64,000 nt of DNA, taken from the sequence record PP408249.1, one strand, 5' to 3'. The translations under genes and the position numbers were made by a program. Each line of letters begins with the position of its first letter. The first letter of the stretch is position 1. The notes beneath the pieces are model-generated. The model saw only the letters and a list, made by a program, of their open reading frames with translations, had not been told where the DNA came from and ran no database searches. This document shows positions 2,224 to 62,433 of the stretch, in pieces.

Positions 2224-2411
2224 ACTAGTTTTAGCTACTTAAAGCGCTGTAGCATAGCTGCATACAAGCGCTAAATTAGCGCAAATTTGCGTGTTTTTAT
2301 GCTTTACAATACATAGCTAATACTACGCATGCAAAACGCGCTATAGCGCAAATTTGCGTGTTTTAAGCACATCTACTATGCTTTTTATTTTGCATTGTAT
2401 TTAATGCACAG
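2224..2411. repeat. GA/TC/GG/CC-free intergenic island with internal 21-nt direct repeat
   Basis: 2224-2372 has no GA, TC, GG or CC; one TC then free again to 2411; tagcgcaaatttgcgtgtttt at 2277-2297 and 2344-2364. Confidence 0.85.
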
Positions 2412-3114: not shown

Positions 3115-3250
3115 ATATGCTACTCCGTTCTATGCATATAGATATTTAGCAATTATACAAAAATGCATAGTTTTAATAGCACACACAAACACGATGCAGC
3201 GTATTAGTTAGTTTTATTACCAAGCAAAATTGTGCATTTTTTGCCCAAAA

Positions 3251-3276
3251 AAAACAGCCCTAGCTAGGGCTGTTTT
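3251..3276. terminator. Intrinsic terminator of the minus-strand operon
   Basis: aaaacagccctagctagggctgtttt palindrome just downstream of 3282..3551. Confidence 0.8.
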
Positions 3277-3281
3277 GTTAG

Positions 3282-3551
3282 TTAAAGCTTTTCTAAAACA
3301 AGTGTTAGCGCATCTTCTCCTATATTAAAGTGTTGTGTCGCACTAACATGACAAAACTTGCCATATATATCTAATGCAGATATTACAACATCTTCAATAA
3401 CTTTTTCTATCATTTCACTAGTATCTTTACATCTACATTTTAGTGTAATGTTATCCATAGTTTCTTCAATGGATATAATATTAATGCCCTTTACTTCTAA
3501 AGCTTCTTTTATTTCTTGCATTTTACTCCGCGCGAGTGGAATCGCGCTCAA
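3282..3551 (-). CDS. Hypothetical protein
   Basis: 89 aa ORF coupled to upstream minus-strand gene. Confidence 0.65.
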   Translation of the reverse strand: MSAIPLARSKMQEIKEALEVKGINIISIEETMDNITLKCRCKDTSEMIEKVIEDVVISALDIYGKFCHVSATQHFNIGEDALTLVLEKL

Positions 3552-5737: not shown

Positions 5738-5766
5738 ATTATATAACAGCATATTACCGTTGTCAA
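5738..5766 (-). promoter_or_regulatory. Consensus sigma70 promoter (minus strand)
   Basis: TTGACA-17-TATAAT on the reverse strand. Confidence 0.8.
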
Positions 5767-7969: not shown

Positions 7970-8862
7970 TAGTTTCGGGGACCTTTAAGTTTTGCTAGTA
8001 CATGTTGTTCTGACCCAGCCAAATGAGGAAAGATCTTTATAAGTTTGTTCCAATACGAATACGGCAAAAAATCGAGATTTATATGATCTAAATATTTTAT
8101 AGGATTACTATGCAACCTATTCCTCGAAAATATAGTCAATATATGTCGTCCTGCTACATAAGACCAATCTATATTTTTAAGAAATTTAATACAACTGTCA
8201 GTAGACATTGTCTGACCATTTGCTTTATGCATATAGAATAGCGAAGACATCCTTTCAAAAAGAAAACAGTGATATTGTTTATTTTTAGAAATAGTATCAA
8301 ACCCTACAAATTTTACATATTCTTCAAAAACAGAATATCTTTTACTACAAAAAAAATTAAATACTCTTTTATCCAACAAAACGTTATGTCGTTTTAATTC
8401 TTTTAAAATAAGTCTTACTATGTTTAAATCAGGTAAAGATTGTATGGTACACAATTGCGTTATTATATCTTTAGATAATGCTTTTCTCGGTTTTAAATTC
8501 TTTAAAACAACATAAAATAATTTATGACATGTTATAGGAACTTTCATAGGAAACATTGAATTTGAAAATTTTCCAATACATTGCCTGACAAGATATAAAT
8601 CTTCTTTACTTATAGATCTATTATATTCACTAATAGAAGATGAATAATTACTTGATATAAAGTTTATTAATTTGGGACTTTTAATTTCCATAAGAACATT
8701 CAATACAGTAGCATTGAACGGTATATATTCAATATCAATAGAATTACAGACTGCAATTAGTGCATCTTTAGCTGAATTATTAGCAATTGTTATTTCTTTA
8801 TTTTTTCTAAATTTAATGAAATATTCTAATTCACTTAAAGCTTTAATGTAACTAATATCCAT
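7969..8862 (-). CDS. Hypothetical protein
   Basis: 297 aa ORF downstream of a sigma70 promoter. Confidence 0.8.
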   Translation of the reverse strand: MDISYIKALSELEYFIKFRKNKEITIANNSAKDALIAVCNSIDIEYIPFNATVLNVLMEIKSPKLINFISSNYSSSISEYNRSISKEDLYLVRQCIGKFSNSMFPMKVPITCHKLFYVVLKNLKPRKALSKDIITQLCTIQSLPDLNIVRLILKELKRHNVLLDKRVFNFFCSKRYSVFEEYVKFVGFDTISKNKQYHCFLFERMSSLFYMHKANGQTMSTDSCIKFLKNIDWSYVAGRHILTIFSRNRLHSNPIKYLDHINLDFLPYSYWNKLIKIFPHLAGSEQHVLAKLKGPRN

Positions 8863-8888
8863 ACATATACCGTAAAAATTTTTACCAT

Positions 8889-8917
8889 ACTATAAAATAT
8901 GTATATTCAATAGTCAA
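8889..8917 (-). promoter_or_regulatory. sigma70-type promoter for the minus-strand operon
   Basis: TTGACT-17-TATAGT on reverse strand, back to back with the promoter at 8952. Confidence 0.7.
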
Positions 8918-8951
8918 CTGTGTTTGGTAACAAAATGTGGTAATTAGGCAC

Positions 8952-8980
8952 TTGACATTGGTATTGTCTTTTAGTAAACT
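8952..8980 (+). promoter_or_regulatory. sigma70-type promoter of ncRNA copy A
   Basis: TTGACA-17-TAAACT with no ORF downstream for ~1.6 kb. Confidence 0.75.
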
Positions 8981-8986
8981 GTGCGC

Positions 8987-9730
8987 TTGCGTAAGAAATG
9001 TATATACGATAGTGCTATATGTATATACAGACAAGTGGCTCTGTTCCGTTATTGGATATTGGTAGTAGAAACTATCCCCATCGTGCTGTTATTGTAGTTC
9101 CGATAGTGTCGGGTTAACGTTTTAACAGTTATTTAAATTATGATTTTGGGTGCCACAGAGATTGTACTTACTAAAAGGACTTAGTAAGAACCGCATATAA
9201 TCTCGAAACTTGTGTAGGATGTTGGTCTAACCACGGCATAGAATATATGCCTCAACTACTACACGGAAAGGATGATGCTCTGGTTGAAACAGAGTTTCTA
9301 TAAATCTTTCAGTATAGATTCCGTATGGCTGAAAGTTGAAACACCAACATCAATAGACTATAGTTTTTGTTAGTGTGGCTATAGTTTATTCCGGCATTGA
9401 AAGTATATACAGTGGTGCGAGACAGTAAGCATTAGTAGCAACTGTATATATGAGTAAGAGGATGCGTTTACAATGAGGAATTACCTATCGGTGCCCGCCT
9501 CAGGGATTGCACTTCCCAACGTACACTAAACTTCGTACCATACCGAAACATACGTTTCTGTTATTACGATTTCCTTCCCAAACGGGGAGGAAATCTTCTC
9601 CGCCCGAATGTCATAAGATCAAAAGCATTAATAATTAATACATAAAATTCGTTTAATTAGTTATTAAGTATATGAGTTGTAGTTTACGAAAACGAATATA
9701 CTTAATAACTACCAGTGAAGCTTGCTTCGC
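8987..9730 (+). ncRNA. Large structured non-coding RNA candidate, copy A (homologue at 62440-63170)
   Basis: ORF-free, GC-richer than flanks, many hairpins; blocks shared with copy B at 9031-9086 (53/56), 9128-9153 (26/26), 9267-9295 (27/29); ends approximate. Confidence 0.75.
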
Positions 9731-9734
9731 TGTT

Positions 9735-10470
9735 TAAAATTGCAATTTGTATTTTCAATTTTATATTTTGAAGTGTGTTTTTGAAAATCAATCTATAAAA
9801 TATAATTTTAAATATTATTTTTAAATGTCATTTTGTGATTTTAATTTAAAATACTATTTCATGATTTAAAATGGAAATATATTAAATAATATCATTTTGT
9901 GATTTTAATTTAAACAATTTCATATAAAACTATTTTGTCTATTTCTTTTATAATCTTAAAGTCATTAAAAACCCTACAAATGTAGGGTTTTTATTTGATT
10001 ATATGGTATTCGGTTTTAGACATTCAGATTATTATAATTAATAATATCTGTATGATAACTATATTTTATAGAAATACATTTACTAATTACATTTGTCAAT
10101 AAATGGTTATTTTCTTTATATTTAATACGTCTCGGGAGTATATAGCAAATATGATAAATCGAGACACATAATATTTGTGTCTATATTTTTAGTTTCATTA
10201 CTCTACATAATTGATTAATAATGTATACAGTTATATACGCTATATTGTAATAACAAACCAAATTATATAGAGAATATACATTAAACTCTGTTTTGTGTTA
10301 AATCGACACTACATATATTATTATGTAGTGATACCTGCTGTATATAAAACTAATTAGTTATTATGTGCTTTAGGAGAATTCCATTATAATTAGTTTTCTG
10401 TGTCATACTCAAATGATGAAAGAATTATATTCTTTCATCTGTTTTATTATATGTTATTCAAGATTTATAA
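9735..10470. other. Very AT-rich non-coding region with direct repeat and multiple palindromes (origin-like)
   Basis: tcattttgtgattttaatttaaa twice (~9827, ~9892); inverted repeats at 9966-9993, ~10307-10330, ~10346-10397, ~10416-10440. Confidence 0.45.
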
Positions 10471-10673
10471 TATAATTTTATAATGTTTGCAATTTATGAC
10501 ACAAGCTATTTTAATAGAATTATACTATTCAAAGTTTTGACTTATTTTATGTGTAAAACGACAAAAATAGGCATATATATAAAAAGCACACCTGTTTCCT
10601 GTATGAAACAAAATAGTATTTTATTAAAAATAGTGTATAGTAATAAAAACATCATTAATCATGTACGTAATTT

Positions 10674-16030: not shown

Positions 16031-16325
16031 AATTAATTATAGCAAAGTATATGAACCAAAAGGCGCACTATATAGAATTCGTCGCATTTCTGACGGTGCA
16101 TTTAGCACAGGGTCTTCTAGTCCGGTGTTTGTAACTTCTGGTCCGGGAAAAGTATTCAATACTTTAGGTAAACTTAGATCTCATCTTACTACTATTCGTA
16201 ATAACCCGGTTTTACAAGACATATACAACGAATGTGAAATTGTTCAGTATGTAGAAGCTGACCAGCCAACATACACTCTAGCTGAACACACAGAATTACT
16301 TATACTTAAAAAGTTAACACAATAA
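16020..16325 (+). CDS. Hypothetical protein
   Basis: 101 aa ORF, GGAG RBS. Confidence 0.75.
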   Translation: MTNKINYSKVYEPKGALYRIRRISDGAFSTGSSSPVFVTSGPGKVFNTLGKLRSHLTTIRNNPVLQDIYNECEIVQYVEADQPTYTLAEHTELLILKKLTQ

Positions 16326-16429
16326 CGCGCTTTACTGCGCGTTAATTTGCGCGTATGCTGCAAAAACATGTAACACTAGAGCTTATATATGCTTATGCTT
16401 AAAAAGCTGTATAACGCAATTTATGCGTT
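16295..16429. other. GA/TC/GG/CC-depleted island
   Basis: Only one GA (16379-16380) in 135 nt; rich in GCGC and AAAAACATG. Confidence 0.75.
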
Positions 16430-21845: not shown

Positions 21846-23262
21846 TAGAACTCTTTCATCTTCTCATAGATTGATATCAAAAGTAGCCGTTAAGATTAAA
21901 ATTCCCCATATGATGAGCGGGAAATTAAATGGAGCATTTGATCACTATTTTAGTAAGAATATAATAGCAGAAGATGCTGCTATCTGTAGATGGGCAGGAG
22001 ATAGCAAATATGCAGGAAGATCGTCGATATATTCTGACGATATACCCCGTCAATTAATACGCAACACTGCAGGAAATGTTTCAGGTTGCACATCTTACAC
22101 TAACAAAGTTATTATGAATTATAAAGAGGATGCCGGAATGACTCAAGTTAACAGAACCTACACACGTAATAGCAACGATATTGAGTTTTCTCTGGAAGAA
22201 GAATTCTCTAATGTCTTTAATGAATCGCCTATAAGAAAAACGTGGGTAGCATTTATAGATTGTAACACAAAGGCAGTAGAAGAAGCATTTAAAACTTGCC
22301 TAAGTAAAGAATCGTTTGATATAATCTCCAAAAAATATACAAATATAACATCTTATTCGTCATCTGATGCAGAGCGAGATGCAGACGTTGCATCTGAGGA
22401 AATTTGGGTAATAGGAAACGAAAAAGCAGCTATTTCTAGAATTACAGATATTTACGATAGTGTACGGTTTATGGTAATTTCTGCAAATGATAGTTGTAAT
22501 GTAGCTAGGTTTGTAGAAGAATTTGGAAAAGTATATGCAAATGCATATCCTAAAGTAAAAGAAGAAAAACCGGAAATTAATATTATTGTGGCCGATTCCC
22601 ACGGTTATGATTTAGAGTCGTTTGACATGACTCCTCTGCAAAACATAGATGCCTTTATTGAAGAAAATTATAACGATGATTTTAAAGACACATCTGAATA
22701 TATAGTAGAAAAAATTATTAGTTCTAGTAAAGGTATAACACTCCTTCATGGCGAACGAGGAACTGGTAAAACTAATTTCATCCGATACATTGCAAATAAA
22801 GCTAAAAAGAAGAAACTCATATATGTTCCTTCTGATATGGCTCCAGAGTTAGCCAGACCTCAGTTTGTCTCGTTTGTTATGAACCACAAAGATAGTGTGT
22901 TTATAGTAGAAGACGCAGAAAATATTCTCCGTCCTCGGGAAGGCGGCGGCAGTTCAGCAGTGTCTAACCTTCTTAACATGAGTGACGGTATCCTAGGTGA
23001 TGCCGTTCGGTGTCAGTTTATTTGTACGTTTAACTGTAAAATTTCAGAAATTGACAGTGCATTGACTCGTAAAGGTCGGTTAAATGCAGAGTATGAATTT
23101 AACAAATTAACAAAAGAAAAATCCCAAAATCTTTTAGACAAAAAATACGGAACAGGAACATATGTAGCAAAGGGCGAAATGACGCTAGCAGACATTTACA
23201 ATATGGATAATCCTGACTTTAAAGTCCAACTTAAGAAACAAAAAATTGGTTTCGGGAACTAA
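21835..23262 (+). CDS. AAA family ATPase with long N-terminal domain
   Basis: LLHGERGTGKT, VFIVEDAE, NLLNMSDGILGD, ALTRKGRL; true start may be downstream. Confidence 0.9.
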   Translation: MRRNRTLSSSHRLISKVAVKIKIPHMMSGKLNGAFDHYFSKNIIAEDAAICRWAGDSKYAGRSSIYSDDIPRQLIRNTAGNVSGCTSYTNKVIMNYKEDAGMTQVNRTYTRNSNDIEFSLEEEFSNVFNESPIRKTWVAFIDCNTKAVEEAFKTCLSKESFDIISKKYTNITSYSSSDAERDADVASEEIWVIGNEKAAISRITDIYDSVRFMVISANDSCNVARFVEEFGKVYANAYPKVKEEKPEINIIVADSHGYDLESFDMTPLQNIDAFIEENYNDDFKDTSEYIVEKIISSSKGITLLHGERGTGKTNFIRYIANKAKKKKLIYVPSDMAPELARPQFVSFVMNHKDSVFIVEDAENILRPREGGGSSAVSNLLNMSDGILGDAVRCQFICTFNCKISEIDSALTRKGRLNAEYEFNKLTKEKSQNLLDKKYGTGTYVAKGEMTLADIYNMDNPDFKVQLKKQKIGFGN

Positions 23263-26713: not shown

Positions 26714-27799
26714 ATGAATATTAATATATGGTATACTAACGTAGAACTACAAACAAAAACAAAGAAACAAGTACAGATTTGGCCTAAAAAAATTACTAGT
26801 CCCGAACCTTCCTACAGTTTTACAAATTGTGTAAGAAATGTACAAAACGTATTTGACGAAATACATATTTTAAAGGATATATCTATTAGACACGGAAGTG
26901 CGAAAGTAATGCAAGCAGCAATATATATAAAAGAGATAGATATGTATGGCAGATTTGATCTGAGGGCAGAATCTCTTGTAGAACTTTTACATACAAAAAA
27001 CATTTCTGTTTCGGAAGGTGTAATTAAAGGTAAGTTTTCATTTGATTTTAGTTCTAGTAGTTATAGAATTATTCCGGCAGATAATGTAATTTCTGCCAGT
27101 GCAAAGAAAACTGCAAAAGAACTAATTCCATTTAGGGCATATAAAGATAAAGTAGGAAATTCCGTTATATACCTAGGGAAGGCATCAACTGAATGTGGCA
27201 AACAATTATTTTTGACAATCGACTTGCCTAATCATCAAGAAGAAAAAGGTCTAGCAAAAATGGCAGTAGATCTTGTAGGCGGAAGATATGCATGGTATAT
27301 AAATTCTGATCATAATGTGTATAAGAACGAATTTGAAAAACTAAAATCATATGACGAAGACATGTACAATGTTATACTAAAATTAAAACAATTAGATGTA
27401 GGTGATCTATCAAGTATATATGAAAAGTATTTCTTAAAGGCGTTTTATTATTGCACAAAAGAAGGACATCGTGTATTTGACCGCAGATTTGATGTAGCAA
27501 CCGGGCGGACGCTAGGCACCGGAAGTTATCTATATAGACTGCAATATACAGTAGGTGTTCCTTCGTTGTATCAAGAAATTGACGATATTAGTGAAATGTT
27601 CGTCAGTAACGGAATTCCTGGAACATATGTAGCTATTCCCAAGAAATGGCTATCTTACAAATATATCAGTGCTAGCAACGCATTACCTTTATACGTAGAC
27701 TTTAAAAATAAAATCGTCCGTAAAACAACTGTAACTGATGAAATTAACCCATATGAATACGATGATAGTTTTATAAATGAAGTATTAAATCATATATAA
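26714..27799 (+). CDS. Hypothetical protein
   Basis: 361 aa ORF, TGnTATAAT upstream. Confidence 0.85.
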   Translation: MNINIWYTNVELQTKTKKQVQIWPKKITSPEPSYSFTNCVRNVQNVFDEIHILKDISIRHGSAKVMQAAIYIKEIDMYGRFDLRAESLVELLHTKNISVSEGVIKGKFSFDFSSSSYRIIPADNVISASAKKTAKELIPFRAYKDKVGNSVIYLGKASTECGKQLFLTIDLPNHQEEKGLAKMAVDLVGGRYAWYINSDHNVYKNEFEKLKSYDEDMYNVILKLKQLDVGDLSSIYEKYFLKAFYYCTKEGHRVFDRRFDVATGRTLGTGSYLYRLQYTVGVPSLYQEIDDISEMFVSNGIPGTYVAIPKKWLSYKYISASNALPLYVDFKNKIVRKTTVTDEINPYEYDDSFINEVLNHI

Positions 27800-27863
27800 T
27801 TTATTTAATACGATACTAGACTATATACGGTATTCTTTTGTATGATATACAATGACAGTTGGG

Positions 27864-28023
27864 AATTTAAATGCTTTTTACAGTTGCTGCAAAGCATGCA
27901 AAATAACGCATACGTAAACAGCACAAAACACGCGCATAATGCGTTGTTTGTGTGCTTTGTGTATACTGCACTAGCATGCAAACTAGCATGCAAAATAACG
28001 CATTTTTGCAGCTATAACGCTAG
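27864..28023. repeat. GA/TC/GG/CC-free island with internal repeats
   Basis: 160 nt without GA, TC, GG or CC; agcatgcaaaataacgca twice; 27989-28007 is the exact reverse complement of 39885-39903. Confidence 0.9.
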
Positions 28024-28236
28024 GGGTACGCATTCCTACAAATATAATAATTTGCTAGAATGATGTATATTTTTAAATTCTAAATTTAACCTATCCTATA
28101 ATATACATTACGGAAATGTTACAATTAAAAATTTTATTATCTCAGACTTTATGCACATTCAATCTTATAATACTATATTAAATACAAATATATTTATTGA
28201 TTTGCAAGTAACATTTAACAAACGGAGTATATTTTA

Positions 28237-29156: not shown

Positions 29157-29461
29157 ATATAAATTTAATACTGATACTTCAACGATGTACGTCTGTAATA
29201 GGAGGATTCCAGCGCGGCGGCGCAACACTTATTCATATTTATAGTGATTTTAATTTATCTGCTATAATGACGTTATACAAAAGAAGATGCAAATGCATTT
29301 TATTTACTGACATTTTGTTTAACGACATTAAAGACGGTTCTATAGATATCATTATCTATATAAGTAAGAATGCAAACCTAATACACGATAAATTTGCCTA
29401 CATAGACACATCTGTTACAGATGAATCTTCTGTTCCTTTACACGATATGACAGGAATATGA
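29153..29461 (+). CDS. Small-ORF family member
   Basis: LILILQRCTSVI..IIIYISKNANLI. Confidence 0.65.
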   Translation: MNINLILILQRCTSVIGGFQRGGATLIHIYSDFNLSAIMTLYKRRCKCILFTDILFNDIKDGSIDIIIYISKNANLIHDKFAYIDTSVTDESSVPLHDMTGI

Positions 29462-29943
29462 ATAATCCTATATATAATTTTATACTTGCAAGACGAATAT
29501 GCAAACGGTATAAAATAAAATTCAATCCTTTTGTAAAATTAGATACAGGAAGTTTACAAATAGATAACGCAGATAAAATAACAGTTAGCGTAAATGTATT
29601 TAATAGTAATTTTATACCTATATTTTGGCACGAAATAGGGCATTATATTCATCATACATTAGTTAATTATAAAATTTATTTAGATTACTATACTCCTATT
29701 TGTCCTACACACGGGTATCTTTTATATAATAAGACACAAGATTTTTATAAATGTCTTTATTCCGAAATGTTTGCTAGTAGATTTGCACTAAAGGTGTGCG
29801 GAGCAAAACATAAGAAATACCTCATAAAATGTTTCCACACATACACTTCTGCTGCATTTAAAACCAACATCGCCAGCCAATCTAAATTTACAAGATTTGT
29901 AGATTTTGTAGAAAAACTTTCTAGAAAATTAGATAGATATTAA
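29458..29943 (+). CDS. HExxH metallopeptidase-like protein
   Basis: FWHEIGHYIH and downstream SEMFASRFA. Confidence 0.65.
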   Translation: MNNPIYNFILARRICKRYKIKFNPFVKLDTGSLQIDNADKITVSVNVFNSNFIPIFWHEIGHYIHHTLVNYKIYLDYYTPICPTHGYLLYNKTQDFYKCLYSEMFASRFALKVCGAKHKKYLIKCFHTYTSAAFKTNIASQSKFTRFVDFVEKLSRKLDRY

Positions 29944-30228: not shown

Positions 30229-30351
30229 CATATAAAAGTATGCGTATAATTTGCACATATAACGCAATAACGCAGCAACAAACAAAACGTAATAAAAAAA
30301 TGTTGCAATAGCTTAAAAGTTTTAGTATAATAAGCGTATAATGCAGCATAG
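30229..30351. promoter_or_regulatory. GA/TC/GG/CC-free island containing the tRNA-cluster promoter
   Basis: 123 nt free of the four dinucleotides; TTGCAA(30303)-17-TATAAT(30326) with upstream A-tract. Confidence 0.75.
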
Positions 30352-31926: not shown

Positions 31927-31955
31927 TTGACCAAACAAACAAAACAGTATATAAT
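31927..31955 (+). promoter_or_regulatory. sigma70-type promoter upstream of tRNA-Arg
   Basis: TTGACC-17-TATAAT. Confidence 0.7.
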
Positions 31956-32006
31956 GTTACGCATATAAAGCATTATTACAAAGCTATTATTAGTTGTACA
32001 AGATAT

Positions 32007-33976: not shown

Positions 33977-34005
33977 TTGACACAAGTATAATTATTTCGT
34001 ATAAT
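33977..34005 (+). promoter_or_regulatory. Consensus sigma70 promoter
   Basis: TTGACA-17-TATAAT upstream of 34037 and the two Ser tRNAs. Confidence 0.8.
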
Positions 34006-39192: not shown

Positions 39193-39414
39193 ATGTCAAC
39201 GACGCCTAGGGGAAAGAAAACTAAAATAACATGCAATAATATAGAATGTAATAATGTATTCGAAGTAAGAATTGCCGATGTTAAAAGAGGTTGGGGACTA
39301 TATTGTTCTAAGTCTTGTAAACAAACTGCACAAGAGCAACAACGGCAAATGATAAAAAAATTATCCGGAGAACATTTGTTACCGAAGAATAAACGAAGAA
39401 AAAAGTATTGGTAA
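39193..39414 (+). CDS. Small Cys-containing phage protein
   Basis: CNNIEC..ADVKRGWGLYCSKSC. Confidence 0.75.
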   Translation: MSTTPRGKKTKITCNNIECNNVFEVRIADVKRGWGLYCSKSCKQTAQEQQRQMIKKLSGEHLLPKNKRRKKYW

Positions 39415-39588
39415 GAGGTATAGTATGAATTTAATACTAAACTATTCAATTTGTGCAAATACTACAGCTATAACTTTTTATATTTTCGGATTAAACATTA
39501 AAAAGGCATGGGTATACGTTACAAAGTCAGATAAGTATGGTAGGTATTTGTATGTATCTCAAGACGGATGTATGGGTGTCTTTCCTGA

Positions 39589-39885
39589 ATGGCAAATATA
39601 ATTAAAATGAAACCGATATTGTATTATGTAGGTGATAATCCCGAAGGGGCATTTTTGTGCGAAATTTATGGCAAGGACGACCCATTTATCAATAATAAAA
39701 CTAGATTTATTAAAGTTAATTCTATTTTTTATATATCTTTTATATCTGCTAAGTATACATATATAAAATTTCTAGTTAGATATAGATTTGTTACATGGAG
39801 GTTATACGACACTGACATTTATATTTCTTTTAGTAGAGCTATGACATCCGTTGAGCGGGAAATTAATAAAATAAGAGGAGTTTAA
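39589..39885 (+). CDS. Hypothetical protein
   Basis: 98 aa ORF. Confidence 0.55.
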   Translation: MANIIKMKPILYYVGDNPEGAFLCEIYGKDDPFINNKTRFIKVNSIFYISFISAKYTYIKFLVRYRFVTWRLYDTDIYISFSRAMTSVEREINKIRGV

Positions 39886-40021
39886 AAAATGCGTTATTTT
39901 GCACGTTTGCATTATGCTATACGCAAGTTTGCAATAACGTGCAAACGCATGTATAACGCTAATACAGCTAGCAATACAGTGCATAAAAACATGTACAGCA
40001 TACTAGCGTTACAACGCATAT
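39879..40021. repeat. GA/TC/GG/CC-free island
   Basis: 143 nt without the four dinucleotides; shares a 19-nt motif (inverted) with the 27.9 kb island and AAAAACATG with 16.36 and 52.89 kb. Confidence 0.9.
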
Positions 40022-40183
40022 CGTTGAACCATAAATGTATATATGTCTGGAGCAATATAGTATTCTTGACAGTTACTATCGATACCTTAATTACATATCA
40101 CATATATAGAAAAAGTTTGAGAACTGGTTTAGAGTCGTATAATTTTTCTTATGTACATGAATTAGTTTAGAAGGATATTAGGT

Positions 40184-40795
40184 TTGATTAAGTTAGTAAA
40201 ACCCATTGCATATTATGGACAAAAATTTGGTATCGCTGTTTCGGGCGGTATTGATTCTATGGTTGCATTGTCCTTCTTAAAGAAATATCCACAAAATAAC
40301 TTCGATGTCTTTCATGTAAACCACGGATCGGAGTATGATATCAAAGCAGAGCAATTTGTGAGAGATTATTGTAGCGACAATAAAATAAATTGCCATGTAT
40401 ATTGCATTAACACAAAAAAACCAAAAGGTTGTAGTTGGGAAGAACATTGGCGAAACGAACGATATAAATTTCTGCACTCTCATGAATTAGAAATCATGAC
40501 TGCACATACACTAGACGACAACGTAGAGACGTGGTTGTTTTATAGTATGCACGGTTCGCCTCGTATCATTCCGTATCGGAAAAAAAATGTCATCCGACCG
40601 TTTATGCTTACTACAAAAAACGAATTTAAAAAATATGCGAAAAGTAATGGTGTACAATGGTTAGAAGATCCTAGTAACCGAGACACCAATTTTAATAGAA
40701 ATCAAATTCGACATAATATAATTCCTCAAGCACTTAAAGTAAATCCAGGATTGTTTAAAGTGATTGCAAAAAAAGTAAGAGAAGAGAATGAATAA
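40184..40795 (+). CDS. tilS: tRNA(Ile)-lysidine synthase, minimal N-terminal PP-loop domain
   Basis: IAVSGGIDSM, HVNHG, RNERYKFL, TAHTLDDNVET, IRPF, WLEDPSN, RNQIRH; lacks C-terminal domains. Confidence 0.9.
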   Translation: MIKLVKPIAYYGQKFGIAVSGGIDSMVALSFLKKYPQNNFDVFHVNHGSEYDIKAEQFVRDYCSDNKINCHVYCINTKKPKGCSWEEHWRNERYKFLHSHELEIMTAHTLDDNVETWLFYSMHGSPRIIPYRKKNVIRPFMLTTKNEFKKYAKSNGVQWLEDPSNRDTNFNRNQIRHNIIPQALKVNPGLFKVIAKKVREENE

Positions 40796-42520: not shown

Positions 42521-42989
42521 CATTACATATATTGTATCAATTACTGCTAGATGCACGTCTATATCTGAAGATGCGTATAGTGATTTCGTTACATTTTGTA
42601 TAGCAGATGTATTTGGTAATTATATAATTCAATATATAACAGAACGCAACAATAAGTTTATAGCTGTATATGAATATACATTTTCTACAATATGATATGT
42701 CTGATTCAAGTATATTATGCAATATAACAAGATATTCGTATACAATAAGACTGAGTAATTATACATCGTTTCATTTTGTTATATTCGGAATGGGTAGGCC
42801 TATAACAAAAGTTGTATCCAGTATACTGTGTACTCCTATTCATATAATAGATGTGTGTAATGTTTCGCATCGTGCAAGAGATACGATTTTTTCGTACAAT
42901 GACACTCAATTACACAGTTCTTCGCATTTGTTTACTATATCATTTCGGAAGTTAAAAGCATATACTATGATAAACGTATCCTACATAAT

Positions 42990-45936: not shown

Positions 45937-46005
45937 CTTTTTCAGTTGCTATAACATGCACAATGTGCAATAATAAAAAACAATGTGCAATTGTGAATAA
46001 AATGT

Positions 46006-46311
46006 ATGAATATTATCATTAACATTCAAGCATCAACATCCGAAATCTTCTTTGACACAGACTGTATCACGTTAATAACGAGTTTAGGCGGTCATGTTCT
46101 TTCGATAAACCGAAGAACAGGAAAAGGCGCAGTTGTACTTCATAATATAAAGTTAGATTCCATCTATCGTATCCTACTATTACAGCACGCAACTGCATCA
46201 CTTGTTGTATGGGGTGCTGTGGATATTAAAGTATCATTTAAAGATATAGACGATGAATACATTTTCCTTGCTATAGGAAGAAGATATTATCACGGCAAAT
46301 GGTTAAAATAA
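46006..46311 (+). CDS. Small-ORF family member
   Basis: MNIIINIQASTSEI..ILLLQHATASL. Confidence 0.7.
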   Translation: MNIIINIQASTSEIFFDTDCITLITSLGGHVLSINRRTGKGAVVLHNIKLDSIYRILLLQHATASLVVWGAVDIKVSFKDIDDEYIFLAIGRRYYHGKWLK

Positions 46312-52619: not shown

Positions 52620-52899
52620 TGTTCATAAGTTTTATATTGAATATTCAACGATATACTTCTATTATAGAAATAGTTTCGTATAGTAATATAAAATTTTGTA
52701 GTTTTCGTCAGTATCCTTTTTATAATGTGATATATGAAATAATTCCACCGTGCAGCAAATGTTTATACGACTACAATCAAATCTACATATTATCTATTTT
52801 AATTCTGCTTATGATAGTATAGTGTTTTGCGATAAAGACAACGACAAAATACATTGCTGCTTATGGTAGCGTGTTTGCATTTAACGCAAAAACATGTTA

Positions 52900-55800
52900 T
52901 ACAGTATTGTTTGTTGAGTATTTTGACATTGTTGTTTCTAAAAATCTTTTATATAAAGGATTAATATGCATAATATATTTAAATTATCATATTGTACAAA
53001 TATGTTTAAATTTAAAATATTATGGGATCAAAAAGTATACCTATGCTCGTTTATGTCATTGCGGTATACTACCCTATATATTTCTGCAGGTCGTATCAGA
53101 TAAATGGTAACAAATATATTAGAATTAATGTATGTATGTCACCATACATATAATATAACAACTAACGGCTACTATAACATTATCTTCTTAAATAAAGATA
53201 ATAATATTATCTTTGTTTTGTATTAAAACAAATGGGAATATTTCTCTTATCACGCAATACTTGCTACATTTATGTTATACATGTCAGACGTATTGTATAC
53301 AAGATTAAAATGTATGACAGACATGGCAATTGTGTGCGTACAATTAATGTTATCTAAGAACATATTAAATTATATAGAATTTGGTTGTATGTAATACAGT
53401 TTAATAATGGCAACAGATATTGATAAAATAACATACATTTCATTTAACTCATGCTATATATCAGTTAATCGTTTTAGTGTTATTATATATTATGAGTACG
53501 GTAGATTGATTTTATATGATGATACCCCCGGGCTTATATAAGAACGTATTCTACATACAGTATAATGTGCGTCATATAAGCATATATTATTTTGATGCAT
53601 GCGAATGTAATATATTACAGGTAGAATGCAATAATTTTCTTACTCTAACATATAAATTAAATGAAAAAACCAATAAGTAATATAGTTGAATTATCGCTTA
53701 ATACGCACCGGTTTAATACCAATTATATAACTAGTGCTCATTGTTTAGTATTTTATAATGTGTCGTCATATCCTATACATTATGTTCGTTTACACACAAA
53801 CAAGCGTTAACACTTATGTCGCCGGAATTAATTCATAATCATAATATAGTTTGTATTCAACACTATCTTAATAGATGGTATACTAGAATATCCCCAACAG
53901 GGATTAATGTGTATTCAGATTCATATGTTAGAATTAGAATAAATGTTCATAAATAAAAATATTATAAATCACGATATACATTATGATATGTTGCAGGTAT
54001 CTTCATGCGCACATATAATAGATTCATCGCTATGTAGCACGTATCTATTAGCATGCATTTATAATAGTAATGAAAAAATTATTATAATTAGTGTTGCATA
54101 TCTAAGATGAATGGTATAAAAGATATAATAGAATTTTCATCGCATGCATACGAAATATGTGCCAATACAGCAAGACTTAGAGATATAGTATACTACTCGA
54201 TACTCATAAAGGCAAAAGACGGTCTTGCATTTTATATGGTAGACTCGTTTGCATATATAACATGACTAGTATCCTTGAATGTTCTTACAACACTTCTAAT
54301 ATTGTGTTTCGTTTTTGTAAAAACAGTGGCATTTTAGTTGTGAACTTTCTAAACAAAAATGCTGACATACATTTCATTGTAATAATTAGATACAAATAAA
54401 CATATCGTTAATTACTAATACATGAGAGTAATAAATGAATAGAGCAGCAAAGAAAAATGTTTCTATATTTGTTATTCAGAATCATACTTTTAGAGTTCAT
54501 GTTGTGCGATATGATTCTGCGAGAATTTCAATATATCTCTCACTTGTACATAATTGCGTTGCATCTTAAGAACTATATCTGCATAATGTAGATTACATTT
54601 GCATGTATAGGATTATCTTTCATATAATATATGCTTATTAACTATACGACATGTATTGAATTACTTTATAGTATTGTATGATTCGTAAAAATATAGTTCT
54701 AATATCACACAACACGTCAAAAATAATATTAGAAAGAAGAACAAGTAAAGTATTACGTGTTTCTATGTTTAAATCAATCGGAAAATACTACTACCATTAT
54801 TATACGGCGTGTGGAAATATATAATGCAAGATCATCATTTCACTACACTGTTGTATATGTCTAATCGTGCAGATAAAATAAAGATTTTTCGACAGCCTTC
54901 CTGTCTTATTGTATATATTAAGTCAGGTATGTTATATATTAATAAACAATTCTTAAAATGTTAGAATATATAGATACTCTCAAATATAATTACATTTTAA
55001 CTGTATGCAGCGGTGTAGAGTCTATATCATTTGAATCATTTACTAGATCAGTGATATCAGTTTCCATAATATATAATAATATTACTATCTTTCCGTGCCA
55101 AACTACACGAACTATACTGTATGGTGTATAATCTTATTTTTATTTCTTGTAATGCTTCTTTAATTAGTTTTTCTATTTTTAATAAAACATTTGAAGTTTA
55201 TATTTATGGAAAAATGTTATTAGTAATTTATTATACAGGACTGCATATATGTTAGATATATTGCTACGGTTCCAACGTAGAGTGGATACAATTAAGGTGG
55301 AGTTAATATGGCGTCACTTGCATTTTTATGAAAAAGCCGGCGAGGAATTTGAGTTATTTCATGCTATAATTCTGCCGCCTGATCACCGAAGTATTAATTA
55401 ATAAAATTCTATAACAAAAACAAGGTGTATTTTTCGGCATTAAAAATTTATGAATAAAGATACAAACAAAGAATCACCTATTATTAAAGAATTACATTTT
55501 ATATTAAGATTGTAAGTAAAATAAAATACTTTTAGAATCTAAAACTAAAATGATCGATTGGGTATTTAAATTGTCTGCTAGTTGCTACCGAATAGACGGA
55601 CAATATAGTGAGTCGATAAAAATATATAATTCATATTGCCTTTTAGGAACTATACAATATTATTGTGCTCAGTTGAAAATAAATTTATATAAATTTTAAT
55701 ATTGTGGGAAGAATTCTTTTAAATAGGCATACTATATGAATGATCTATTACAATACCAACTCACATTATGTTCCATATCTTTGCAGAAAGCTCGTTTTAA

Positions 55801-56680: not shown

Positions 56681-56744
56681 TGAGCTTTCTACTAAATACA
56701 CAATATAACCATAGACAAATAAGTGCATTATGCTAATATATACA

Positions 56745-57160
56745 TGCTTACTAAACAGTTACTTGTTAAGTAAGTTAAAAAGTCTGTAACAGTGATGTTA
56801 CAGGATACACAGGCAAATACGGTTGGAAGATGCTGTGTAAAGAACAAATATCCAGCTCATTCCTAGGCATAATAGCCTACACAATATATTTGAATGGGCA
56901 TAAAAACTTCCAAAGAACCTTCGAAATTTTCTTATAGGATAGTGTATTAGAAGGAATGCACTATCAGGAAGCTGTAGGTGATGGTTGCTATCCCAGACAG
57001 TCCTTTCTAAAATACTTTAATATGATATAAAGTTCTATGCAACCATATACATGCTGTAAACTATGCATACACCATGTATTAAACGTAAAAGCAAAACCTT
57101 CAGTTAGTAATCTCGCAGTGAAGGGGGTAGGTGAGTGCTACCCAAACTCAACAAACAACT
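56745..57160 (+). ncRNA. Candidate structured RNA or long structured 5' leader
   Basis: TAGACA-16-(TG)TAATAT promoter at 56712-56739; hairpins at 56784-56803 and 56938-56965; two loop-to-downstream pairings (pseudoknot-like). Confidence 0.5.
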
Positions 57161-57649: not shown

Positions 57650-57942
57650 GGTTTCCAAATTCAATTTTAGGCACAAACTCGGATCCGCATTTGCATTTTG
57701 CATTTACATTTTGTGTTCTGAGTGTATATGCAAAATGCAATCGCGCATGTTGTCGATGCATTGGCTAATCTTTTATTTTTGATAGTTTAGAAAAGATTAA
57801 GAACAGAAACTATCTGTAAATTAATAAAAATAACATTTACATTACATACACATATGCATATACTATATACAAGTTATGCGCTGTTGCATACGTAAATACC
57901 TCCTATGTTGTTTAGATATGTCGATTCTGGTATAACTAGATA

Positions 57943-60680: not shown

Positions 60681-60938
60681 TGTATGATTAGATTAAAAAG
60701 ATATGTTCAATTGCATAGCATATACAGATTGTCTTACTATGCGCACGGCATACATTTTAGCAAAACAAAGAATATAATGCTTTACGTAGGAAACGCAGGT
60801 CCCGTACCCGTAACATGACAGTATATAGCGTTAAAATGTGCATTTTTTGCACGATTTTGCGGGGTATGCGTTACAAGCAATACACACATACTGCTTTTAA
60901 AATGCATGCTTACATGCGCTTTGTAGGGGGTTTAAAAC

Positions 60939-61151
60939 ATGCTTAAATTAGTTACCACTGTGCTATACAACGTCTGTGTAGCTTCGTTAATAATGATTGT
61001 GTTTGTATGTGGTATAAATTTAGTAATGTATATAGATAACAATACTGCCAATAATCCAGTTGTTATCTTTATTTCCCTTCTATCGGTTATTTGGGGTGTT
61101 GCGAGGTTAAGCTATATGTTTGTTACTATCCAATTTCAGTCCAAGAAATAA
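60939..61151 (+). CDS. Small membrane protein
   Basis: AGGGGG RBS, two hydrophobic helices. Confidence 0.65.
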   Translation: MLKLVTTVLYNVCVASLIMIVFVCGINLVMYIDNNTANNPVVIFISLLSVIWGVARLSYMFVTIQFQSKK

Positions 61152-62404: not shown

Positions 62405-62433
62405 TTGACATTTGATGTGTATACTAGTATAAT
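62405..62433 (+). promoter_or_regulatory. Consensus sigma70 promoter of ncRNA copy B
   Basis: TTGACA-17-TATAAT followed by ~860 nt with no ORF. Confidence 0.85.

Follow-up and report, generated by a model that had tools for sequence, protein, structure and literature searches.

The 64-kb stretch analyzed here (64,000 nucleotides, hereafter the window) is 100% identical to the final 64 kb of Pseudomonas phage vB_Pa-PAC2 (PP408249.1), a Pseudomonas aeruginosa jumbo phage of the genus Wroclawvirus (the PA5oct group), and it contains short islands in which no G is followed by a purine on either strand. This exclusion is highly non-random, and we lean towards explaining the islands as duplex stretches selected to lack the targets of the phage's own guanine modification, that is, as modification-free regulatory windows. 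In what follows, the GR context denotes a G followed by a purine on either strand (YC being its complement), and a GR-free run is one without GA, TC, GG, or CC. The island on which the analysis centers spans positions 27864 to 28023.

An earlier note, made from the letters of the window, had listed several of these runs. Their coordinates and lengths were confirmed, with the correction that two of the spans, GR-free otherwise, hold one interruption each (a TC at 2372/2373 in 2224-2411 and a GA at 16379/16380 in 16295-16429). As a sharper statistic, independent of AT-richness, we considered the G/C positions only, each scored for GR on its own strand. Throughout the window, 46% of these positions are in GR context, while the focal run, with exactly 160 nt the longest in the window, comprises 60 consecutive G/C positions outside it (P about 1e-16), so that the ~1e-10 first estimated for a run of 160 nt was conservative. 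The runs of consecutive non-GR G/C positions in the window measure 60, 57, 51, 33, 29, 23, and 21, against an expectation of 0.04 runs of at least 20. Under a first-order Markov null, simulated 200 times, the longest GR-free run averaged 65 nt and never exceeded 92.

The exclusion is also specific. When the window was scanned for each of the ten strand-symmetric contexts that the 3' neighbor of G can define, GR gave the top three runs (log10E of -12.2, -11.4, and -9.7), the runner-up was GA alone (log10E of -6.8), and contexts set by the base 5' of G gave no excluded runs in the same unbiased scan. Inside the islands, the dinucleotide GC is enriched 3.3-fold and CG 1.8-fold, and AG and CT are at their normal level. 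The islands are therefore neither purine-pyrimidine alternation, as already noticed at first reading, nor low-complexity sequence. The G+C enrichment over the flanks was likewise borne out: the focal island has 39% GC, compared to 31% for the whole window, and the islands are generally GC-richer than typical flanks.

Strand symmetry, sequence content, and turnover of the islands

The exclusion behaves as a property of duplex DNA. On the top strand, the GR-free and YC-free extents coincide (median boundary offsets of -5 and +12 nt), the islands contain 270 G and 263 C, and there are no long runs elsewhere that lack GR or YC alone. These figures bear on an explanation at the RNA level, by which leaders or small RNAs transcribed from the islands would have to avoid GA and GG, as Shine-Dalgarno-like sequences or nuclease targets, and YC would be missing through hairpin pairing. 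Some islands do cover the first 15 to 40 nt of transcripts, and the one at 60864-60926 stops exactly at the start of a Shine-Dalgarno G-run. However, the islands reach 40 to 110 nt upstream of the predicted starts, and the coincidence of both extents, the equality of G and C, and the lack of one-strand-only runs speak against it as well. Folding is only weakly above that of dinucleotide-preserving shuffles (z from -0.2 to -3.0). We consider a constraint on the RNA very improbable, and hairpins were rejected as the cause, since the shuffles fold nearly as well and the two extents coincide.

A G-run forms the sharp end of several islands: TAGGGG, CAGGGA, TAGGGGG, and TAGGGCCC (window 28020-28026, 2408-2412, and 60923-60930; PA5oct ~27699). 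One of these is clearly a Shine-Dalgarno sequence, while the rest could be sites of transcription start or some kind of boundary signal. An association with terminators was also considered and rejected, with only 2 of 21 islands directly after a strong one.

A reading frame free of GR and YC cannot encode Asp, Glu, Gly, or Pro, which makes the islands non-coding in effect. Two open reading frames (ORFs) are annotated over them. The ORF at 27842-28063 (EST35_0386) covers the focal island in PA5oct and is not called in phages MIJ3 or 30-3, while that at 39889-40170 (EST35_0432), annotated in some relatives, lies over another GR-free island. Both are probably not genes.

Exact repeats are abundant within some islands. 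The 19-mer AGCATGCAAAATAACGCAT occurs twice in the focal island (27893-27911 and 27985-28003), where GCATGC is found three times, and a focal-island 19-mer is found inverted once, in the island 39879-40021 (39885-39903); the exact reverse complementarity of 27989-28007 and 39885-39903, pointed out previously, was verified. The island 2224-2372 has four palindromes of the form GCGC-W-GCGC (CGCAAATTTGCG twice, GCGCTATAGCGC, and GCGCTAAATTAGCGC) and a 21-mer present twice. There are also several 12-mer palindromes, and otherwise only short words are common to the islands. Searches for a motif shared among islands, by k-mers and with mismatches tolerated, gave counts within a GR-free Markov null. 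Thus, the motifs singled out in the earlier note (TAACGCA and others) do recur, although no more often than in random sequences of the same GR-free dinucleotide alphabet, and are mostly a consequence of that restricted alphabet. A common binding motif was consequently rejected as the unifying feature, the proposal of a common binding protein drawn from shared motifs does not hold, and the common denominator of the islands is the exclusion itself.

The same repeats could nevertheless suggest that GR-freeness is a by-product of dense protein-binding arrays with GC-core palindromes (GCGC, GCATGC, TGCA, ACGC/GCGT), i.e., operator or enhancer clusters for dimeric proteins in which modification would be irrelevant. 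The richness in perfect 12-mer palindromes and exact repeats, the 3.3-fold enrichment of GC, and the slightly better folding of some islands (z down to -3.0) are all in its favor. It does not account, however, for the GR-freeness of the DNA that separates the palindromes, of islands that are AT-rich (25% GC), and of the coding ends under 16294-16429; moreover, no motif is common to the islands beyond the null, their sequence drifts at the background rate while GR-freeness is kept, and the match to the biochemically inferred GR specificity (see below) would be an accident. We give binding arrays a small, though not negligible, chance of being the whole explanation.

This drift was seen by comparing the window with PA5oct, 30-3, and MIJ3. 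Variable sites amount to 2.6 to 2.7% in the islands and 2.5 to 3.4% in the rest of the genome, yet only 3 of 37 distinct island substitutions create GR or YC, when 30% would be expected under the observed mutation spectrum, and two of these three are in the weakest, AT-rich candidate islands. GR-freeness is kept fully in 23 of 29 island-by-relative comparisons, and adjacent double changes (GC to CT, GT to AC) preserve it. What is conserved is the GR-free property and not the sequence, a pattern that is suggestive, rather than decisive, of purifying selection on GR-freeness. A mutational scar without selected function, left where hypermutation or damage in a specific context had locally removed GR and YC, could draw on the dominance of G>A and C>T among the island substitutions. 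The same transition bias is found genome-wide, though, and decay of GR and YC would lower the G+C content, whereas the islands are GC-richer than their surroundings and enriched 3.3-fold in GC. They are also sharply bounded, located at specific regulatory positions, and maintained across eleven isolates. We find such a scar hardly credible.

Restriction digests and genes for a modified guanine

The excluded context coincides with one derived from enzymatic digests. According to a 2025 preprint on END nucleases, PA5oct virion DNA resists EcoRI, BmrI, XbaI, and BsaI, the sites of which each contain GA or GG, and is cut by BsgI (GTGCAG), FspI (TGCGCA), HindIII (AAGCTT), NdeI (CATATG), and DraIII (CACNNNGTG). 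None of the sites in this second group has an obligatory GR. We counted the sites in ~212 kb of Wroclawvirus DNA (the window and loci L008, L016, and L017), finding 73, 37, 70, and 17 for the four resistant enzymes, in the order given, and 76, 27, 33, 93, and 25 for the five cutters. A further enzyme to which the DNA is resistant, ApaLI (GTGCAC), has no GR in its site, but only one such site exists in the ~212 kb, so that its "resistance" is due to nearly missing sites and not to modification. The near-absence of the 6-mer GTGCAC is in itself unusual. With this exception removed, the digests partition perfectly by obligatory GR, the very context excluded from the islands, and both together are indirect evidence that the modification is placed in GR. 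The published evidence for a modification in PA5oct consists of this restriction resistance and of sensitivity to modification-dependent END nucleases.

The same preprint reports that PA5oct encodes QueE and a QueD-type synthase. In the annotation of PA5oct and MIJ3, FolE, two QueD paralogues, and QueE are present, and tblastn with the proteins of Pseudomonas phage iggy recovered FolE (3e-33), QueD (5e-24), and QueE (6e-6), the latter also matching a QueE-like PHROG (E = 7e-49). Directly upstream of QueE, a phosphoribosyltransferase (PF00156, E = 2e-11) is encoded at PA5oct 226936-227370 (L012 34936-35370). The protein gp208, considered in the search for a DpdA, has a phyletic pattern that does not match that of QueE.

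P. aeruginosa commonly carries type I-F and I-C CRISPR (clustered regularly interspaced short palindromic repeats) systems, and the islands could instead avoid a host factor that recognizes YC/GR in regulatory DNA unable to afford escape mutations, such as the protospacer-adjacent motifs (PAMs) of these systems (CC for I-F, TTC for I-C), a YC-specific deaminase, or a DNA ADP-ribosyltransferase. It is true that CC/GG and TTC/GAA are absent from the islands on both strands. However, avoidance of PAMs does not need the loss of every GA/TC beyond GAA/TTC, the I-E PAM (AAG/CTT) is still common in the islands, guarding 1 to 2 kb of a 287-kb genome would leave targeting possible elsewhere, and the identity of the excluded context with that of restriction resistance would have no explanation. 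Escape from a host factor therefore seems quite unlikely, and the alternatives raised at first reading (PAM avoidance, targets of ADP-ribosylation or deamination, Z-DNA, and nicks) gained no support.

Early transcription units and the role of the islands

The window corresponds to PA5oct genes ~gp340 to gp461 followed, beyond the record junction, by gp1 to ~gp50 (the long terminal repeat), and carries twelve tRNA genes, the only Rfam matches in it, together with the locus of noncoding RNA (ncRNA) ncRNA001. Its identity to further phages of Wroclawvirus, among them PA5oct, MIJ3, Ettore, and Callisto, is 97.8 to 98.7%. The genomes of this genus, the only one in its family, measure 285 to 288 kb. 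We scanned ~90% of a Wroclawvirus genome for islands (all but PA5oct 62-93 kb). Runs of at least 20 non-GR G/C positions numbered 11 in ~112 kb of early or terminal-repeat DNA (7 in the window and 4 in PA5oct 12-62 kb), versus 1 in ~146 kb of structural, replication, and nucleotide-metabolism DNA. The latter lies in the metabolism module between clpP and a minus-strand gene (L017 38430-38497, corresponding to MIJ3 88430-88497).

Other genomes lack comparable islands. Over the initial 50 kb, the longest non-GR run is 13 G/C positions in T4 and 12 in pf16. The latter phage, whose QueE is the closest one outside the group, shows no excluded context in that stretch. In 24 IMG/VR loci totaling 180 kb, collected as distant relatives of the PP-loop gene next to the island 39879-40021, the longest run was 16 and no islands were found. 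IMG/VR contained no relative of the 361-aa gene preceding the focal island and no exact copy of the focal 19-mer. The 24 loci (L023 to L046) share 58 to 78 consecutive G/C positions without the dinucleotide GC, ~500 to 1,100 nt downstream of the PP-loop gene, possibly as a result of coding bias.

As for transcription, the PA5oct paper reported that growth is abolished by rifampicin, so that the phage needs the host RNA polymerase. By RNA-seq, early transcription was found to come almost exclusively from the Watson strand, with early and highly transcribed genes located at gp34 to gp105 in the terminal repeat "but also gp450," the only such gene named outside the repeat, and with ncRNA1 and ncRNA2 abundant throughout infection. 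Taking the early units and ncRNAs from this published annotation, islands map to the 5' ends of ncRNA001, ncRNA002, gp34, gp450, and the tRNA arrays, a correspondence that holds for those islands only (Table 1).

Good sigma70 matches were found in 6 to 8 of 19 islands (TTGCAA-17-TATAAT, TTTACA-17-TATACT, TTGCTA-17-TATACT, and others). Compared to the GR-free null, the summed best sigma70 scores were elevated on the forward strand (P = 0.023) and not on the reverse strand (P = 0.88), and two islands stood out individually, 30229-30351 (P = 0.01, forward strand) and 57814-57899 (P = 0.017). Strong promoter-like matches on the Watson strand of the window are GR-depleted (0.367 versus 0.461), while those on the Crick strand are not. 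From their positions and forward-strand scores, many islands are most plausibly promoter regions, belonging to units with early or strong expression.

Table 1. GR-free islands and stretches in the window and at ncRNA002 of PA5oct
Feature	Coordinates	Strand	Description
Focal island	27864-28023		160 nt, 39% GC, 60 non-GR G/C positions; between 361-aa gene (26714-27799) and small-gene cluster from 28237
Island	2224-2372		149 nt; reaches 2411 with one TC; directly after strong terminator and TTGAC hexamer
Island	16294-16429		86 nt (16294-16379) plus 50 nt (16380-16429), one GA at 16379; overlaps last ~30 nt of one gene and first ~35 nt of next; DNA fold z = -3.0
Island	30229-30351	+	123 nt; directly upstream of first tRNA array (tRNA-Met 30367); TTGCAA 30303-30308, 17-nt spacer, TATAAT 30326-30331
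GR-free stretch	31932-32002	+	Begins after GA/CC of TTGACC -35 box (31927-31932), TATAAT 31950-31955; runs to tRNA-Arg (32007)
Island	39879-40021		143 nt, 51 G/C positions; upstream of PP-loop (TilS-like) gene 40184-40795
Island	45943-45995	+	53 nt; ends 10 nt before ATG of gp450 (46006-46311; protein 96% identical); TTGCTA-17-AATAAT
Short island	52866-52916		51 nt, 16 G/C positions; between small early ORFs
Island	56715-56783	+	~45 nt upstream of gp34 (ATG 56830), first gene of early block; begins after GA of TAGACA hexamer
Island	57814-57899	+	86 nt; brackets ncRNA001 5' end, about -57 to +28 of predicted start; TTTACA 57836-57841, 17-nt spacer, TATACT 57859-57864
Island	60864-60926		63 nt, 23 G/C positions; ends at Shine-Dalgarno G-run of gene at 60939
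Island	PA5oct 21901-21967		Brackets ncRNA002 5' end; TTTACA-17-TATTAT

Just downstream of the island at the 5' end of ncRNA002, the body of this RNA (PA5oct ~21985-22060; L008 ~9985-10060) is extremely GC-rich for a genome of 33% GC, and over 36 consecutive G/C positions G never precedes A or T (log10E about -10). Two other segments of the window can be mentioned. Positions 8862-10483 (1.6 kb) have no ORF of at least 60 aa and match the region of the annotated PA5oct ncRNA004, but are not GR-free. The 161-aa product of 29458-29943 has a sub-threshold Pfam match to the zinc-metalloprotease-type family ATLF (E = 5.5e-4, 20 bits for a cut-off of 27.4), too weak to interpret.

The explanation that we favor joins the results of this analysis (an exclusion that is specific for GR, acts on the duplex, is regionally distributed in the genome, and persists while the sequence turns over) with the GR-specific restriction resistance, the que genes, the rifampicin sensitivity, and the identity of the early units, taken from the literature. 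A 7-deazaguanine-type base would be placed on G wherever the next base is A or G. With ~46% of G/C pairs modifiable and no GR in the islands, windows of 50 to 160 bp would stay chemically ordinary DNA. For the most part, the islands are located where the earliest and most transcribed units are controlled, namely at gp34 (which opens the early block), gp450, the abundant ncRNA001 and ncRNA002, and the tRNA arrays, and many have about the size of an RNA polymerase footprint (roughly -40/-55 to +15/+40), with putative sigma70-type promoters whose -35 boxes are devoid of GA (TTGCAA, TTTACA, TTGCTA). The likely purpose would be to keep these sites readable for the host RNA polymerase when the injected DNA is still fully modified, and the longer, palindrome-rich islands may serve additional host or phage DNA-binding proteins in a similar way. 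The unmodified state of the islands, and an impairment of binding by modification, we infer. The idea of the earlier note, in which protein binding is the reason for leaving the islands unmodified, fits the early-unit positions and the sigma70-like promoters and is still conjectural.

Several observations weigh against this explanation. The GR context of the modification is derived from restriction digests in one preprint, and the transcription starts were deduced from RNA-seq feature boundaries. In the comparison with relatives, the naive binomial P of 0.001 for the deficit of GR-creating substitutions becomes ~0.08 after a conservative ascertainment correction, the islands having been defined in the reference genome. 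No convincing sigma70 promoter is present in the focal island or in the other two of the three that are largest and richest in GC; these three carry island-specific palindromes and repeats. Conversely, perfect TTGACA-17-TATAAT promoters occur in GR-containing surroundings at 33977-34005 (+), 62405-62433 (+), 5738-5766 (-), and L008 831-859, one perfect promoter of this kind lies inside the early block, the -35 box of such promoters holds a modifiable GA, and a -35 box with GA stands at the start of three islands. Since consensus promoters of this quality lie in ordinary DNA, RNA polymerase has no general need of GR-free DNA, and the notion that all promoters must be GR-free is ruled out; together with the three islands just mentioned, these promoters imply that a modified G in the -35 box is tolerated or used differently. 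A cluster on the Crick strand is driven by the perfect promoter at 5766, whereas the early transcripts were reported to come from the Watson strand only.

The gene complement weighs in the same direction. In ~90% of the genome, tblastn with iggy DpdA gave no DpdA (DpdA1) match, and neither Pfam nor PHROGs revealed a TGT/DpdA match among 16 candidate proteins, searches that the subfamilies DpdA3/4 are described to escape. No QueC homolog was found by tblastn in the same ~90%, and the only PP-loop protein found is TilS-like (ATP_bind_3). The phosphoribosyltransferase next to QueE hints at a step at the nucleotide level, which by itself would give no context specificity. The combination of this enzyme with the lack of QueC and of a recognizable DpdA suggests an unusual route of a 7-deazaguanine base into DNA, and the pathway may stop at 7-carboxy-7-deazaguanine (CDG) or branch. 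Genome-wide modification in GR, as originally proposed, is thus supported independently by the digests and by the presence of FolE, the two QueD, and QueE, whereas the searches found neither DpdA nor QueC. The PP-loop ATPase (ATP_bind_3, annotated as TilS-like) is encoded at 40184-40795, immediately downstream of the island 39879-40021; as it shares a superfamily with QueC, a role in base modification instead of tRNA lysidine synthesis is conceivable.

A variant of modification-free windows would turn the modification into a transcription timer. GR-free promoters would fire on the modified, injected genome and thereby define the early class, while GR-containing promoters, including the perfect TTGACA-17-TATAAT, would be masked until newly replicated, unmodified DNA becomes available. 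We consider this timer unlikely. If it were true, the specificity of a modifying enzyme could be read from the raw genome as a "negative footprint" in regulatory islands.

Relation to known systems

Context-specific base hypermodification is known as a shield of phages against restriction and CRISPR, but the literature that we searched did not address the means by which the regulatory DNA of these phages stays readable. Full-text searches retrieved no description of modification-free regulatory islands in phages, and the iggy and CAjan papers make no mention of promoters, intergenic regions, or motif-free stretches. If windows free of modification are indeed hard-wired in the sequence, modification carries a regulatory cost that shapes the genome. 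The target context of an unknown modification could then be predicted from sequence alone, just as GR emerged in this analysis from a blind scan and agreed with the digests. Regulatory DNA would be pinpointed in a poorly understood jumbo phage that is a therapeutic candidate, and defined unmodified landmarks would be at hand for engineering or for probing modification-dependent defense nucleases.

Two known phenomena are related to the islands, motif avoidance and context-specific phage DNA modification. The closest cases of the latter are CAjan, with 7-deazaguanine in GA and GGC, and Pseudomonas phage iggy, with a strict GA context proven by nanopore sequencing, in both of which the base is installed by DpdA. 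The digests and genes imply for PA5oct, as in these phages, a subset of G chosen by its 3' neighbor, a 7-deazaguanine derived from FolE, QueD, and QueE, and protection from restriction enzymes with the motif in their site. In contrast, the implied context is GR (GA plus GG), neither QueC nor DpdA was found, and the nature of the base is deduced from genes. In iggy (MN029011, L018), GA is the top excluded context, with GA/TC-free runs at 42700-42870 (171 nt), 27694-27854 (161 nt), 39300-39456 (157 nt), and 3179-3286 (108 nt) for an expectation of 0.02 runs of at least 120. Three of these four overlap annotated ORFs (small or of low complexity, one a Gln/Pro/Ala-rich protein) and one is intergenic, making iggy ambiguous as a positive control.

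Regulatory windows are known to escape genome-wide base modification in the CpG islands of vertebrates and in the non-methylated GATC clusters at regulatory sites of bacteria (pap and agn43). The similarity would lie in short regulatory windows left unmodified for regulatory proteins. There, however, the sequence retains the motif, and bound proteins or exclusion of the enzyme protect it, whereas here the target dinucleotide has been purged, so that escape would be hard-wired and need no protecting factor. With the avoidance of restriction sites (palindromes) by phages, the islands would share the removal of short oligonucleotides by selection because of an enzyme acting there, but that avoidance is genome-wide, concerns 4- to 6-mers, and responds to host nucleases, while here a dinucleotide class is missing from about a dozen windows of 50 to 160 bp and the enzyme is most likely the phage's own. 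Finally, there is a resemblance to the early promoters of T4 and the PeSL (promoter-early stem-loop) cassettes, in that strong sigma70 promoters of a large lytic phage would lie among its small early genes and have to work on modified DNA. Unlike such cassettes, the islands show no extended homology to each other, a strong terminator precedes only 2 of 21, and T4 itself is without GR-free runs in its first 50 kb (maximum of 13).

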